Shown here in pieces: positions 20,976-40,100 of a stretch of DNA of 64,000 nucleotides. Position 1 is the first letter of the stretch; every line of letters starts with the position of its first letter. Source of the DNA: Octopus bimaculoides (Eukaryota); assembly GCF_001194135.2 (NCBI RefSeq), contig NC_068999.1:47537686-47601685 (forward strand), read 5' to 3'. The notes beneath the pieces are model-generated. The model did no database searches and was not told the origin of the DNA. It saw only the letters and a list, made by a program, of their open reading frames with translations. The position numbers and the translations under genes are program-made.

Positions 20976-21016
20976 ATGGAAAACATTAAAAGACGGGAAA
21001 ATCCAAACGTTCCAAA
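20976..21016 (+). CDS. ME1: Candidate alternative first coding exon 1a of malic enzyme (MENIKRRENPNVP+2 nt)
   Basis: ATG followed by 41 nt and a consensus donor AA|GTAAGT; phase 2 fits the acceptor at 37133. TCAGT Inr-like motifs lie about 60 nt upstream. No homology support. Confidence 0.5.
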
Positions 21017-22485
21017 GTAAGTTTATCATTTAGACTAAGCTCAATCTGTCTACATTTATATAATACGTGGGTGGTGTATATGTTTATAATACGTGTGTAT
21101 ATTTATTGTTTTTATACATTCTGTGGGTGTGGACGGGGACCCAATATATTGAAAATTATTTTGTTAACGACCAGAATTACGTATTTTCTATGCTATATCG
21201 GAATATTGAAGACAATTTACATTCTTAAATTGTCATTTGAGATTTCGTTTTCTTTTACTTTATACACACACACAAATATATATATATTTTTTAATGATAC
21301 ATCTATCATTTAAAACTATTTCGACTTAAAATTTGCTAAAGATTTAAACTTAACAATTGAATATTAATTTTTACATACAAAAAAAAAAATAAATAAATTA
21401 CGATTCTAGTGAATTTTCGTCCGCTAAATTCTCACAACTCGCCCGTAGTAATTTATGTAACAGTGGAAAGTCCGTTGCGACAATTTGGCATTAGCGTTGT
21501 GTCCTTCATTAAGAATGTTCGCTGACAAACGTCATGTAGCGCAACTAAAAGAAAATCGATGCACAACTGTAGACAAACAAGAGATTAGATTTTCTTCACA
21601 TCACTCCCTACTGTCTAGAAACTGAATTAATGTAGTCTTTAGATACACAATGACTGAAAACAAAGGATGAGTTAGTTGTAGCTGGGTTGTTTTTGATGAC
21701 GGCTATTATCGTTCAGCGGCGAGCTGGCCAGAATCTTTAACACGTCGGACGAATTGCTTAGCGGCGTTTCTTCCGGCTTTTTATGCTGAGTTCAAATCCA
21801 GCCTTTCATCCCTTCGGAGTTGATAAAATAAAGTACCAGTGAAATACTGGAGTTGATGTAGTCGACGTGTACCCTCCCCTAAAAAAAAAAACATGTCCCT
21901 GATCCCTGCAACAGTATTGTAACCTTGGTCACTTATAGGACATAGAAACTGGCTGACCAGCCTTATGAGTTCTAGGACGCGAGAGTAATATATATNNNNN
22001 NNNNNNNNNNNNNNNNNNNNNNNNNNNNNNTATATATATATATATATATATATATATCGTTGATAGACGACCTGAGGCGAAATATCAATAATAACAACAA
22101 AATAAAGTTACCACCTGTTACTTGTCAGTGTGTACAGTTCGTTACTGCGACAATCTCCAGCCATCATAGTCCACACACTTCATGCTCAATCGCTCCCACA
22201 AAGAAAAAGGAAAAAAAAAAAAAAAGAAACTACTATAAAAAACATACCAGGTTTCCCAATCAGTCAAGGTAAATATATAAAACACTTAAAAGTAGAAATA
22301 CCACTAGCATAATTAGTTTAATTAACTCTCCCAACACCACCACCACCACCAAACATTATACTTGAATGTACACCATCAATGATAAGTGCAAAGTGACCAT
22401 AACCATTGTCCTATTCTCTAATTCCATTGTAACTACTACTAGAATTAATAGATGTACTAATGTATACTGTATAGATGGGTGACCT

Positions 22486-37100: not shown

Positions 37101-40100
37101 CATTGACATGCCCTTTTTTCCCTCTGTTTCAGAGCCAATTCTGTCTCTGTTGGAAATATCCATACCAAAACTATGGATATGTTCAAGACATCTGGGTTGA
37201 CCTGGAAAGAATCTTCAGCAAAACATGTGAGCCAAGCAAAATCCCGAGGCATAGATATCATCCGCAACCCAAGAATAAACAAGGTATACATACACACAGA
37301 TTTTGTTTATTTGTTGAATTTATGTCTATTTTCCTATACTAGCATGAGTTAGATGATTACTTATTTATTTGAGGCAGTATTTTACGGTCAGACCTCCCTT
37401 CCTGTTAATAACTCATACTTGGTTTTTTGAGTAAGGGAGTTTTGTTTTGTTCAATTGGTCTTTGAAAATGCAGAATTACAGGACATTGTTGATAGGAAAT
37501 GTAAATAATGTACAATTGCTTTTAAATTTTGCTTTATCCAGAGAAAAGGAAGAAATTAAAATGTTCAGTTTTTAAAATGTAATGCAAGCAAATCAGCGGT
37601 CTGCCTTGTCCATTTAAATTGAAAACTAATTAATAAACAGTAATTTTTAACTATGCAAACATTTCAATCAAATCAAACTGGAAGAAGAGAGTAAAGGGAT
37701 GGAATCAGCTGTGATGTTATTTCAAAACAACAAATCAATGGAATAACCTTTTGCTATTTTCATATTCTTCCCAAAGAATTAATCCTTTCGCATTCAGATT
37801 ATTCTGTCAAAGCTGTAGGATTTATTGCTTTGAAATTAATCCTGCATTATCTTCAAGATTTCGATGATGTGATTGTTTATTTCTAAAATGACCTTGTTAA
37901 ATAAGAGTGAGAGGCCAGATCTGGTCAGTAGAATATTTCGGCCAGATATGGCAGGTTTTAGTGCTAAAGGGTTAAATGAGACTACCTTAGAGAATTCGAG
38001 AGACTACAGTATAGTTAATCCGTCATGAATCAGCAATATCAAGTATCATCATTATCATCGACCTATCAGGGACAAACTGCAACTCATGGAACTTTCTGAA
38101 TGGCATTGCCTAAATGAAAAATTAAATTTGATTGTATTTTAGTGGTGTGGCCCCACCTAATAATGAGTCATGTCTAATGTGGCCCATTTGTCAAGAAAGG
38201 TTGCCTATGCCTGGTTTATCTTATCAGTCATTACTCAAAATTTTCTATTTATCAGCACTTAAATGTGGATGTTCTTTAAGAATAAACTATACTGTGTTAG
38301 GTTGTTGTTTGCACTCCGTCGTTTTACAACGTCGAGGGTTCCAGTTGATCCGACCAACGGAACAGCCTGCTCGTGAAATTAACATGCAAGTGGCTGAGCA
38401 CTCCACAGACACGTGTACCCTTAACGTAGTTCTCGGGGATATTCAGCGTGACACAGTGTGACAAGGCTGACCCTTTGAAATACAGGCACAACAGAAACAG
38501 GAAGAAAGAATGAGAGAAAGTTGTGGTGAAAGAGTACAGCAGGGTTCGCCACCATCCCCTGCCGGAGCCTCGTGGTGCTTTAGGTGTTTTCGCTCAATAA
38601 ACACACACAACGCCTGGGAATCGAAACCGCGATCCTATGACCACGAGTCTGCTGCCCTAACCACTCTCATATTGGCTTTTTGGTGCAAAATCCACTCTTG
38701 TTTATATAAACGAAATGCACTCTTATATAAACAAGATTGCATTTTGCACCAAAAAGCTAATATGAGAGTTTCTTTCTGGGTCTCTACCACATCACAGTTT
38801 ATTCTAACAGAACGCCAACCTTCAAACGGGGATAAATTTAACACGGTATTAACACTGTGTCTGTCTCTAATATGTATTTTTCAGAAGTTTCCATTAACTG
38901 AATTACTCTGGAGTGACAATAGGTGCGACATTTCTACTGCCTCTATTATTACATGATTAAATAAATGTTCTAATTTGTAAAGATATCTTAAGGGTCCACA
39001 TTAGTTGTTTATGATTTTTTTTCGATTTTCCTAAATCCTTGTATACTGAGTTCTTAATTCATTGAATTCACTTGCAGAGCCTGGCTTTCACATTAAGGGA
39101 ACGTCAGATAATGGGTATTCATGGCTTGCTGCCTCCCTGCATCATTACTCAAGATCAGCAAGCTTACCGAGTGATGGAAAATTTCCGACGCCGTCCCACT
39201 GATTTAGACAAATATATTTATTTGACAGCCTTACTTGATAGAAATGAGCGTTTATTTTACAAAGTCCTCACAGAACATGTAGAAGAAATGATGCCAATAG
39301 TATACACCCCGACTGTTGGGCTGGCCTGCCAGCAGTATGGGCTTTTGTTCAGGAGACCAAGGTAACTTTAAGAAGGGTGCTTATATTGTTTGTTTGTTGT
39401 GTAGTCATAGGTCAGGTTAAGGTGCATGACTCAGTCGTTAGAGTGTCGGGCTCACAATCATGAGGTAGTGAGTTCAATTCACGAACCGGGCTGTGTGTTG
39501 TGTTCTTGAGCAAGACTCTTTATTTCACGTTGCTCCATTTCACTCAGCTGTAGAAATGAGTTGCGACGTCACAGGTGCCAAGCTGTATCGGCCCCTTTGC
39601 CTTTCCCTTTGATAACACCGGTGGTATGGAGAGGGGAGGCTGGTATGCATGGACAACTGCTGGTCTTCCTTGCCCAGACTTGTGCCTCGGAGGGGAACTT
39701 TCTCGGTGCAACCCCATAGTATTCATGACCAAAGGGGGTCTTTACCCTTTACCAGTCATAGGTCAATCCTGGTTGAGTACACCTATGATCAGAGGTCTTC
39801 CCGCCATGACCATCCCATCTTTTTGTATATCAGGGCCTACATTTTCAAGTGCCTTCTTAATTAGGACAGTGGACGAGATTTGGTTGCTCTTTCTGGCATG
39901 TCAAGTGACCTTGCAAACTCTCTTGTTAGCCCCAACTGTTTAACTGTTAGTTTCATACACATTGTTTTAATGTCCACTTTCTTATGCTTGCATGGGTCAG
40001 ATGCAGTTTATTGATATCCTTCCTGTAGCTGATGCATGTTTGTTTCCAAACAAGGTAATATTTCCCCATCGCCAGACATGTTTGCACGGAATATGGGAAA

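Follow-up and report, generated by a model that had tools for sequence, protein, structure and literature searches.

Human fumarate hydratase is dually targeted by means of an alternative transcription start or first exon (Dik et al. 2016, as cited in PMC11653698), and the branched-chain aminotransferase of Kluyveromyces marxianus is encoded by a single gene where a related lineage has two paralogues (bioRxiv 10.1101/2022.04.27.489738). In both systems the transcripts of one gene either include or omit the 5' part that encodes the presequence, as proposed for the octopus gene described here. They concern different enzymes, however, and their localisation was tested by experiment, whereas the octopus case is known from sequence and transcripts. 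Within the malic enzyme family itself, vertebrates use two genes, mitochondrial ME3 and cytosolic ME1, where we propose one gene for both forms in octopus. Gastropods and bivalves also have two genes, a long presequence-bearing malic enzyme (∼600-612 aa) and a short one (∼572-594 aa). In arthropods, alternative N-termini on shared downstream sequence are annotated for malic enzymes (RefSeq Cotesia glomerata X1/X2/X3, Daphnia magna X4/X2); one isoform is presequence-like and the rest are not; one short form begins at an internal Met. These isoforms are known from annotation alone, belong to a different lineage from octopus, and have first exons unrelated to it in sequence. Literature searches on malic enzyme alternative first exons, dual targeting and octopus returned nothing on cephalopod malic enzyme isoforms. 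Set beside these systems, the octopus case would be a fairly ordinary use of the well-known route by which one enzyme serves two compartments.

We analysed a window of 64,000 nucleotides from Octopus bimaculoides (contig NC_068999.1, positions 47,537,686 to 47,601,685 of the forward strand); all positions below are counted from its first nucleotide. The malic enzyme gene in this window has two alternative first exons, 1a and 1b, which precede the shared exons 2 to 13:

20837-20975, + strand: putative 5' leader and/or promoter for 1a transcripts, judged from conservation
20976-21016, + strand: coding part of exon 1a, 41 nt from the ATG at 20976, MENIKRRENPNVP plus 2 nt (AA), phase 2, donor AAA/GTAAGT at 21017
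21996-22030, no strand: assembly gap, (TA)n microsatellite in the intron after exon 1a
30958-31106, + strand: exon 1b, 99 nt or more of 5' UTR, then 50 coding nt from the ATG at 31057 (31057-31106) ending AG, phase 2, donor AAG/GTACAA at 31107
37133-37283, + strand: shared exon 2, preceded by TTTCAG, takes two bases from the upstream exon
39078-39361, + strand: exon 3, AG/GT borders, 100% match to RNA contig L016, PF00390 match
40936-41011, + strand: exon 4, spliced model, L016
41108-41269, + strand: exon 5, spliced model, L016, sequence motif, PF00390 match (E=3.9e-22)
42663-42766, + strand: exon 6, spliced model, L016
43343-43452, + strand: exon 7, spliced model, L016
45110-45207, + strand: exon 8, spliced model, L016, GAGEA dinucleotide-binding motif
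47308-47421, + strand: exon 9, spliced model, L016, WMVDSRGL aligned with WMVDSKGL of human ME3
47856-47967, + strand: exon 10, spliced model, L016
48143-48285, + strand: exon 11, spliced model, L016, PF03949 match
49309-49479, + strand: exon 12, spliced model, L016, PF03949 match
51101-51656, + strand: exon 13, coding as far as the stop codon (51335-51337), followed by 319 nt or more of 3' UTR, L016 matching through 51656

Joined to exon 2 and the 11 further exons, exon 1a gives a product of 600 aa and exon 1b one of 603 aa, exactly identical to XP_014767933.1 (isoform X2) and XP_014767925.1 (isoform X1), respectively; a start at the ATG at 37173 gives 573 aa. Exon 1b encodes the N-terminal half of the predicted presequence and exon 2 its C-terminal half, followed by Met-31 and Met-33 (in-frame ATGs at 37173 and 37179) and the beginning of the conserved enzyme. 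A preliminary description, made from the nucleotides of the window, had put forward two mutually exclusive ATG-bearing first exons, both in phase 2 and joining one acceptor at 37133, together with an internal in-frame ATG and products of 600, 603 and 573 aa. We reproduced each of these features, and the identity to the RefSeq models bears out the two longer products. The lengths also parallel those of human ME3 (604 aa) and ME1 (572 aa), taken from solved structures. The X1/X2 pair is already public, and the structure is not new; the RefSeq and UniProt models hold the same 603 and 600 aa proteins in entries that carry no localisation statement, and the 573 aa product is unannotated. Were exons 1a and 1b chance picks? 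Positions 20000-37132 contain 502 ATG-started, stop-free, phase-2 mini-exons ending at GT, and 56 of them have donors that agree with the consensus at 7 or more of its 9 positions, compared with 6 of 9 for the donor of exon 1b. Arithmetic alone would thus offer hundreds of alternatives, but database and RNA evidence single out 1a and 1b.

The explanation we favour, and regard as probable, is that one octopus gene supplies both mitochondrial and cytosolic NADP-malic enzyme by first-exon choice. Transcripts with exon 1b would give the 603 aa precursor, whose first ∼30 residues, from exon 1b and the start of exon 2, would serve as a matrix-targeting presequence. Another promoter ∼10 kb upstream would produce transcripts that begin with exon 1a and are spliced to the same exon 2 acceptor. 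These would be devoid of the N-terminal half of the presequence, and their translation, from the 1a ATG (600 aa) or from Met-31 or Met-33 (573 or 571 aa), would yield a product predicted to be cytosolic.

The Pfam domains malic (PF00390) and Malic_M (PF03949) are both present along the full length of the protein, and both also give exon-level matches above the cut-off in the window. Among solved structures the best match is human mitochondrial ME3 (788.7 bits), with ME1 at ∼765 and ME2 at ∼717 bits. As in ME3, the exon 9 motif has Ser following the conserved Asp in the second dinucleotide fold; Ser rather than Lys at this position is what we take to be a determinant of NADP specificity. The octopus enzyme is predicted to be NADP-dependent and of the ME3/ME1 type, not of the NAD(P)-type represented by ME2.

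Four whole-genome searches of O. bimaculoides, two with the Pfam profiles PF00390 and PF03949 and two with protein queries (that of octopus and a short-type one from Patella), found this malic enzyme locus and no second malic enzyme gene; such searches score the best candidates, and a very divergent or unassembled paralogue could escape them. The count of paralogues, which the preliminary description had named as a check on its single-gene proposal, came out at one gene instead of two. Our malic enzyme tree was built without vertebrate sequences, and the long/short division within it is known as a molluscan split alone, not as the ME1/ME3 duplication. It places four cephalopod sequences in the long clade (21 sequences, support 100/97), along with chiton, bivalve and gastropod forms, and none in the short clade (support 100/99). 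A short-clade query likewise retrieved, among named cephalopod proteins, long-type Octopus and Acanthosepion clusters only. The octopus gene is like the molluscan long forms, both in its clade and in its N-terminal pattern with an HTS-like motif. It is unlike the situation in gastropods and bivalves in that neither the O. bimaculoides genome nor the named cephalopod proteins yielded a short-clade gene. On these sequence grounds we assign it as the cephalopod orthologue of the presequence-bearing, ME3-like molluscan NADP-malic enzyme, and the alternative first exons appear to fill the place of the short-clade gene. New here are the single malic enzyme locus, its clade placement and an analogous first exon in cuttlefish.

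Splicing of exon 1b to exon 2 is seen in octopus RNA. Contig L016 (Logan, SRR32601320) joins 30958-31106 to 37133, agrees with the spliced model of exon 1b and exons 2-13 without mismatch over 2230 nt, and confirms all 13 exons. The first four bases of this contig differ from the genome, a stretch too short to interpret. It is the single full-length octopus RNA contig on record, and no octopus RNA with exon 1a was seen; a search of the protein collection with the first 100 aa for N-terminal fragments carrying the 1a peptide was likewise negative (3 candidates, one irrelevant match) and gave no Logan RNA evidence for 1a. Use of exon 1a in vivo is suggested by annotation: two species have RefSeq models of it, and O. 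vulgaris a PASA-based one. The annotations of O. sinensis (X1/X2) and of O. vulgaris (CAI9737011/CAI9737010) have the same pair of N-termini, which brings the 1a-to-exon-2 junction to three species. In O. vulgaris the alternative forms come from PASA, run on Iso-Seq and RNA-seq assemblies (PMC10700109).

Both classes of transcript are present in cuttlefish RNA. Transcripts for a 603 aa form (L019-L022) and for a 572 aa form (L017, SRR8281687, and L018, SRR9970004) share one sequence from the exon 2 acceptor onwards and differ upstream. Read in frame, the alternative cuttlefish exon contains a TAA and lacks an ATG; its transcript therefore encodes no presequence, and the product begins at MLKTSGL, a Met-31 that corresponds to octopus Met-33. 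Comparison of this exon with octopus exon 1a gave chance-level matches of 11-14 nt, and between the two lineages even exon 1b is undetectable at the DNA level. In octopus and cuttlefish a Met stands directly behind the presequence; other molluscan long forms have none there.

Dual localisation could instead arise mainly during translation or import, through leaky scanning on the 1b mRNA to Met-31 or Met-33 or through inefficient import of a single precursor. The ATG at 37173 lies just 30 codons downstream, in frame and in a strong context (aaaactATGg), and alternative start codons are said to be the commonest route to dual localisation (PMC11653698). The 1b ATG, however, has A at -3 (gataccATGa), which is unfavourable to leaky scanning, and separate transcripts without the presequence exon are found in cuttlefish RNA and in the octopus annotation. 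We consider this alternative improbable and retain first-exon choice as the favoured explanation. The 1a ATG has T at -3 (gaattcATGg).

Matrix presequences occupy the N-terminal 20-40 residues, are basic and rich in hydroxylated residues, contain no acidic ones and can fold into an amphipathic helix. For the predicted products, simple descriptive features were used as a measure of presequence character, calibrated within the family on 16 long and 12 short molluscan forms. The first 31 residues of the 1b form contain no Asp or Glu; its first 25 contain 3 Lys/Arg and 7 Ser/Thr, with a net charge of +3, and its maximum hydrophobic moment (0.68) is within the range seen in the long forms and not within that of the short forms. 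Across 1b forms there is no acidic residue in the first 25 (the first is at 31-32), the net charge is +2 to +3 and the moment 0.57-0.68. The 1b N-terminus also matches those of molluscan long malic enzymes in the HT(S/K) motif encoded by exon 2, which aligns with their xHTS motif. The description of this leader as presequence-like, with no acidic residue before position 32, agrees with these values, and isoform 1b looks like the bearer of a mitochondrial matrix presequence. In the 1a and Met-31 forms the residue at position 2 is acidic and the moment is 0.39-0.50, as in the 12 short forms. At the N-terminus both resemble the short, cytosolic-type paralogues. By these features 1b is the one alternative product with a predicted targeting signal, and dual mitochondrial and cytosolic localisation is plausible.

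If both isoforms were mitochondrial, the two first exons would serve differential transcriptional control only. The 1a form retains the exon-2 half of the presequence in common with 1b, together with a basic cluster (KRR or KKR), a triplet that is conserved between species, and its N-terminus has a net charge of +2 in 25 residues. Set against this are its acidic residues (positions 2 and 8, or 2 and 4 for O. sinensis), a hydrophobic moment of 0.41-0.50, within the cytosolic-type range, and the inability of the alternative cuttlefish transcript to encode any presequence. Import of both forms seems very improbable to us, and a cytosolic destination for the 1a product remains the preferred prediction.

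Conservation among octopuses bears on the two first exons differently. The order 1a, 1b, exon 2 is kept in O. sinensis and O. vulgaris, as are the 1a ATG, frame and donor; both mini-exons are thus present in frame in these other cephalopods, where the preliminary description had suggested looking for them. The kept 1a ATG and frame prove little, because the three Octopus species are ∼94% identical in non-coding DNA. Exon 1b differs from O. sinensis at 3 of 50 nt, two of the changes being synonymous, and cuttlefish exon 1b has the same coding length of 50 nt and the same phase. Exon 1a differs at 9 of 41 nt (8 of these changes fall in codons whose amino acid is altered), compared with 19 of 339 nt (5.6%) in its flanks (p=0.0012), and because of this difference the 1a peptide appears not to be under purifying selection. 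The earlier proposal that promoter or exon choice does here what two paralogues do in vertebrates was upheld as regards gene structure and the single locus, and was weakened as regards constraint on the 1a peptide.

The lack of constraint would suit an enzyme that is essentially mitochondrial. The 1a transcripts would then be rare, tissue-restricted or non-functional by-products of an upstream promoter, or would carry an alternative regulatory leader, and cytosolic NADPH in cephalopods would come from other enzymes. A 1a peptide diverging four times faster than its flanks is in keeping with this, as are the visible RNA, all of it free of 1a, and the cuttlefish contigs on record, ∼150 for the 603 aa forms versus 2 for the 572 aa form; the presequence-less cuttlefish transcript may be a minor one. 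It is harder to reconcile with independent annotation of the 1a form in three species, once by a transcript-driven pipeline, with assembly of the presequence-less form in two independent cuttlefish runs, with the Met placed right behind the presequence in octopus and cuttlefish but not in other molluscan long forms, and with the absence of a further malic enzyme gene from the O. bimaculoides genome searches. We therefore regard an essentially mitochondrial enzyme as rather unlikely, though deserving more weight than a purely translational origin, and continue to favour supply of both compartments by first-exon choice.

A cytosolic-type paralogue, presumably ancient, is retained by gastropods, bivalves and at least one annelid. 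Tentatively, and with somewhat less than even confidence, we suggest that coleoids lost this paralogue and rebuilt a cytosolic enzyme from the mitochondrial-type gene through an upstream promoter and first exon that bypass the presequence, together with a new Met behind it (Met-33 in octopus, Met-31 in cuttlefish) as a possible start codon. Should the two first exons indeed distribute the enzyme over mitochondria and cytosol, octopus would provide a clear case among animals in which an alternative promoter makes up for a lost paralogue. It would mirror yeasts, in which species with one gene rely on alternative transcription starts and those with the duplication on two genes. Gene-level expression values would then mix two compartments, and first-exon-resolved counts alone would be informative for cephalopod NADPH and pyruvate-malate metabolism. 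Apart from this sorting hypothesis, the locus is a routine, already annotated isoform pair.

The assembly gap lies ∼980 nt downstream of the 1a donor. Its flanks are colinear and on the same strand in the ungapped loci of O. vulgaris and O. sinensis, its right edge, TATATATCGTTGATAGAC, is identical in O. vulgaris, and the X2-type proteins of both species pass from the 1a peptide straight into exon 2. The colinear ungapped loci and these proteins rule out a hidden exon or frame problem; the gap is judged harmless, conceals no coding exon and leaves the reading frame unaffected. Exon 1a was also considered as part of an upstream gene, and this was rejected: the long ORFs in 1-36000 are translations of microsatellites and repeats, and those tested gave no Pfam match. 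Directly 5' of the 1a ATG, positions 20837-20975 are ∼94% identical to O. sinensis and O. vulgaris, and upstream of 20837 the alignment with both falls apart into A-rich indels. The gene range on record for O. sinensis and O. vulgaris begins exactly at the 1a ATG.

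The window corresponds to Octopus bimaculoides C19:47537686-47601685, plus strand. The malic enzyme gene was rebuilt on the forward strand from two alternative first exons, a common acceptor exon and eleven further exons, the downstream ones being delimited by open frames and AG/GT borders.

Exons of the malic enzyme gene in the window (exons 3 to 13: open frame, AG/GT borders)
20976-21016, forward strand, exon 1a coding part: ATG at 20976, 41 nt, then GTAAGT
31057-31106, forward strand, exon 1b coding part: ATG at 31057, 50 nt, then GTACAA
from 37133, forward strand, exon 2: preceded by TTTCAG, in frame only with two upstream bases
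39078-39361, forward strand, exon 3
40936-41011, forward strand, exon 4
41108-41269, forward strand, exon 5
42663-42766, forward strand, exon 6
43343-43452, forward strand, exon 7
45110-45207, forward strand, exon 8
47308-47421, forward strand, exon 9
47856-47967, forward strand, exon 10
48143-48285, forward strand, exon 11
49309-49479, forward strand, exon 12
51101-51337, forward strand, exon 13 coding part

Re-reading of the sequence agrees with the preliminary description on both first exons and their phase-2 join to exon 2, and the rebuilt model reproduces all three predicted products (600, 603 and 573 aa). By sequence arithmetic alone, the two-first-exon pattern is not beyond chance. The interval 20000-37132 holds 502 phase-2 mini-exons (ATG-started, stop-free, GT-ended) compared with 214 in mononucleotide shuffles, and in 56 of the 502 the donor agrees with the consensus at 7 or more of 9 positions (shuffles: 7); the exon 1b donor matches 6 of 9 only. 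The choice of exons 1a and 1b thus rests on outside evidence.

Such evidence comes from databases and RNA. XP_014767925.1 (NADP-dependent malic enzyme isoform X1 [Octopus bimaculoides]) has exactly the sequence of the 603 aa product, and XP_014767933.1 (isoform X2) exactly that of the 600 aa product. O. sinensis carries the same X1/X2 pair, its X2 beginning MENDKKRTSPNVLK..., and both forms occur in O. vulgaris (CAI9737011 and CAI9737010). Since both isoforms are existing database entries, the structural part of the finding is already public. An octopus RNA contig, L016 (Logan, run SRR32601320, 2236 nt), codes for the 603 aa protein; the spliced window (30958-31106 plus exons 2-13 to 51656) matches its positions 5-2234 with no mismatch in 2230 nt. 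This proves the predicted junction from 31106 to 37133, together with all others of that model, and gives exon 1b a 5' UTR of at least 99 nt. Bases 1-4 of the contig (CCGG) mismatch the genome upstream of 30958, so 30958 is the outermost 5' position supported for the 1b transcript. No RNA contig was found for exon 1a in a cluster with one full-length octopus RNA contig only, and querying with residues 1-100 of the 1a form yielded no fragment. Support for exon 1a is indirect: alternative models in RefSeq for two species, and the model for O. vulgaris. Alternative forms were added to the O. vulgaris annotation through PASA updates using Iso-Seq and RNA-seq assemblies (PMC10700109). Both transcript classes very probably exist.

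The cephalopod N-termini were compared with 16 long, presequence-bearing molluscan forms and 12 short, cytosolic-type forms, a descriptive calibration within the family rather than a validated predictor. Long forms (596-612 aa) have 0-2 acidic residues in the first 25 (none in 13 of 16), a net charge of +2 to +5, a maximum 11-residue hydrophobic moment mostly of 0.5-0.7 and, in most, an xHTS motif near residue 30-35. The 1b forms of octopus and cuttlefish match this pattern in these descriptive features, as had been proposed for octopus: the first 25 residues contain no acidic residue, the first one lies at 31-32, and the moment is 0.57-0.68. Exon 2 codes for an IHTK/VHTS motif matching xHTS. 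Short forms (572-604 aa) mostly start MAE..., which puts an acidic residue at position 3; their moments are 0.31-0.52. Within the short-form range fall the octopus 1a form (Glu-2, Glu-8, moment 0.41), the octopus form starting at Met-31 (Asp-2, 0.39) and the cuttlefish 572 aa form (0.41). The 1b form is very likely to be mitochondrial.

Paralogues were counted by whole-genome six-frame searches of the O. bimaculoides assembly with PF00390, PF03949, the octopus protein and a short-type Patella protein. All four queries match exons of the window locus only; no second malic enzyme locus was found among the best-scored candidates, and the count suggested in the preliminary description gives one locus. 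In a maximum-likelihood tree of 40 sequences, without vertebrates, four cephalopod proteins fall inside the molluscan long clade (100/97), which also holds chiton, bivalves and gastropods. Gastropod and bivalve short forms group apart, in a clade of their own (100/99) to which an annelid short form attaches at 80/70. When the whole collection was searched with the Patella protein, short-clade matches came from numerous gastropods and bivalves; named cephalopods were represented only by the Octopus and Acanthosepion clusters of the long type (63% identity), and unnamed Logan proteins could be cephalopod. On the simplest reading, the cephalopod line would have lost the short, cytosolic-type paralogue. 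The closest solved structure is human mitochondrial NADP-ME3 (8e76, 604 aa; 788.7 bits), followed by ME1 (~765) and ME2 (~717); the chain lengths in the structure table agree with those quoted earlier for ME3 (604) and ME1 (572). In the octopus protein the conserved core starts around residue 49, in ME3 around residue 44; octopus WMVDSRGL aligns to ME3 WMVDSKGL.

Cuttlefish and octopus lineages split deep in coleoid history. The cuttlefish (Acanthosepion) cluster contains 603 aa proteins with N-terminus MALRLTKLCRVLTPSSANILSSNTVHTSSTDMLK..., the commonest in 126 contigs, and a 572 aa protein (N-terminus MLKTSGL) in two contigs, each assembled from a separate run. Both classes of transcript have the same sequence from TGCCAATATACTC on, which corresponds to AGCCAATTCTGTC at the start of octopus exon 2; upstream they are unrelated. 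The presequence exon agrees with octopus 1b in coding length (50 nt) and phase. In the alternative exon there is no in-frame ATG, and an in-frame TAA stands three codons 5' of the junction, so translation has to start at the methionine matching Met-33 of octopus X1. RNA of the other coleoid lineage thus contains an alternative first exon that skips the presequence. No DNA similarity was detectable between this exon and octopus 1a, nor between the exons 1b of the two lineages, so the alternative exons may or may not be homologous. L017 (SRR8281687) assembled the 572 aa isoform and L020 (SRR8281686) the 603 aa one; the run accessions are adjacent, which hints at sample- or tissue-specific first-exon use.

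Among octopuses, the order 1a, 1b, exon 2 is retained in the O. sinensis and O. vulgaris loci, whose recorded gene ranges begin exactly at the 1a ATG. Introns there have about double the length, with 19.9 kb from 1a to 1b against 10.1 kb in O. bimaculoides. Measured between the 1a ATG and the stop codon, the gene is 30.4 kb long (20976-51337) in O. bimaculoides and ~58 kb in the other two; the difference stems from their first two introns, which are longer by a factor of two to three. Conservation of the mini-exons, a check proposed earlier, is partial: the 1a ATG, frame and GTAAGT donor are kept, but the peptide is not. Between exon 1a (20976-21016) and O. sinensis (L023 10001-10041), 9 of 41 nt differ, 8 of them in amino-acid-changing codons, against 19 of 339 aligned flanking nt (Fisher p=0.0012); 1a is therefore not conserved as a peptide. 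Its coding part diverges faster than adjacent non-coding DNA. Exon 1b differs at 3 of 50 coding nt, two of them synonymous. The retained 1a ATG and frame mean little, the octopus species being too close (~94% non-coding DNA identity).

We propose that two promoters ~10 kb apart would give transcripts starting with 1a or 1b and common from exon 2 on. The 1b mRNA, whose ATG has A at -3, would be translated into a 603 aa precursor carrying the whole presequence. Presequence residues 1-17 would be missing from the 1a mRNA; position -3 of its ATG is T in O. bimaculoides and A in O. sinensis, and the next in-frame ATG, at 37173, stands in a strong context. Its product may be 600 aa, 573 aa or both, neither with a predicted presequence-type N-terminus. 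The unconstrained 1a peptide fits a role needing only the absence of a targeting signal; it fits equally well exon 1a being a mere 5' leader. That the non-1b form is a functional cytosolic enzyme is somewhat favoured. The proposal of dual mitochondrial and cytosolic isoforms from one gene is reasonable and partly supported, by gene structure, the presequence-like 1b and the single locus.

Distinct transcripts of one gene are a textbook route to mitochondrial and non-mitochondrial isoforms. Human fumarate hydratase is cited for this listed route (PMC11653698). A yeast preprint on branched-chain aminotransferase (10.1101/2022.04.27.489738) sets a single gene against two paralogues, the same contrast as for malic enzyme. 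Arthropod malic enzymes in RefSeq share the octopus layout, with the first exon alone differing: Cotesia glomerata (X1, X2, X3) and Daphnia magna (X4, X2) have one presequence-like and one short form. Among these proteins (P0088, P0090, P0092 of C. glomerata; P0104, P0105 of D. magna) one annotated N-terminus starts MG...S, which might be an N-myristoylation site. Publications on malic enzyme isoforms of cephalopods were searched for, and none was found. The two isoforms had been annotated before, and the mechanism belongs to a known kind. Modest added value comes from two points: cephalopods have apparently lost the cytosolic-type paralogue, and cuttlefish RNA shows a parallel alternative first exon.

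The assembly gap at 21996-22030 lies ~980 nt 3' of the 1a donor, within a (TA)n run, and is therefore intronic. Its flanks keep strand and order in the O. vulgaris and O. sinensis loci, both ungapped; O. vulgaris has a (TA)n tract at the matching site, with an identical right-hand edge. In the 600 aa proteins of both species the 1a peptide joins the exon 2 peptide directly. Colinearity and this direct join exclude a coding exon hidden in the gap, and the reading frame from 1a to exon 2 is independent of it. A tandem double copy of the gap's left flank lies within the intron in O. sinensis (L023 10730-11138 and 11761-12172). The upstream 20 kb of the window contains only repeat-like or microsatellite ORFs, those tested having no Pfam match.

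Further features of the window
7737-8208, assembly gap upstream of the gene (one of four)
11939-12110, assembly gap upstream of the gene
15769-15828, assembly gap upstream of the gene
18237-18521, assembly gap upstream of the gene
41581-41910, forward strand, short interspersed repeat (further copies in both orientations)
44395-44553, reverse strand, short interspersed repeat
44690-44881, reverse strand, short interspersed repeat
57702-57848, forward strand, short interspersed repeat
62813-63025, reverse strand, short interspersed repeat
~62318-63841, reverse strand, cyclin gene exons: weak Cyclin_N match, peptide pieces resembling the cyclin box

The repeat occurs in introns and downstream of the gene and yields similar pseudo-ORFs, e.g. 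RPRK(D/N).... The cyclin gene lies downstream of the malic enzyme gene, tail-to-tail, and the same neighbour is recorded at the O. sinensis and O. vulgaris loci.
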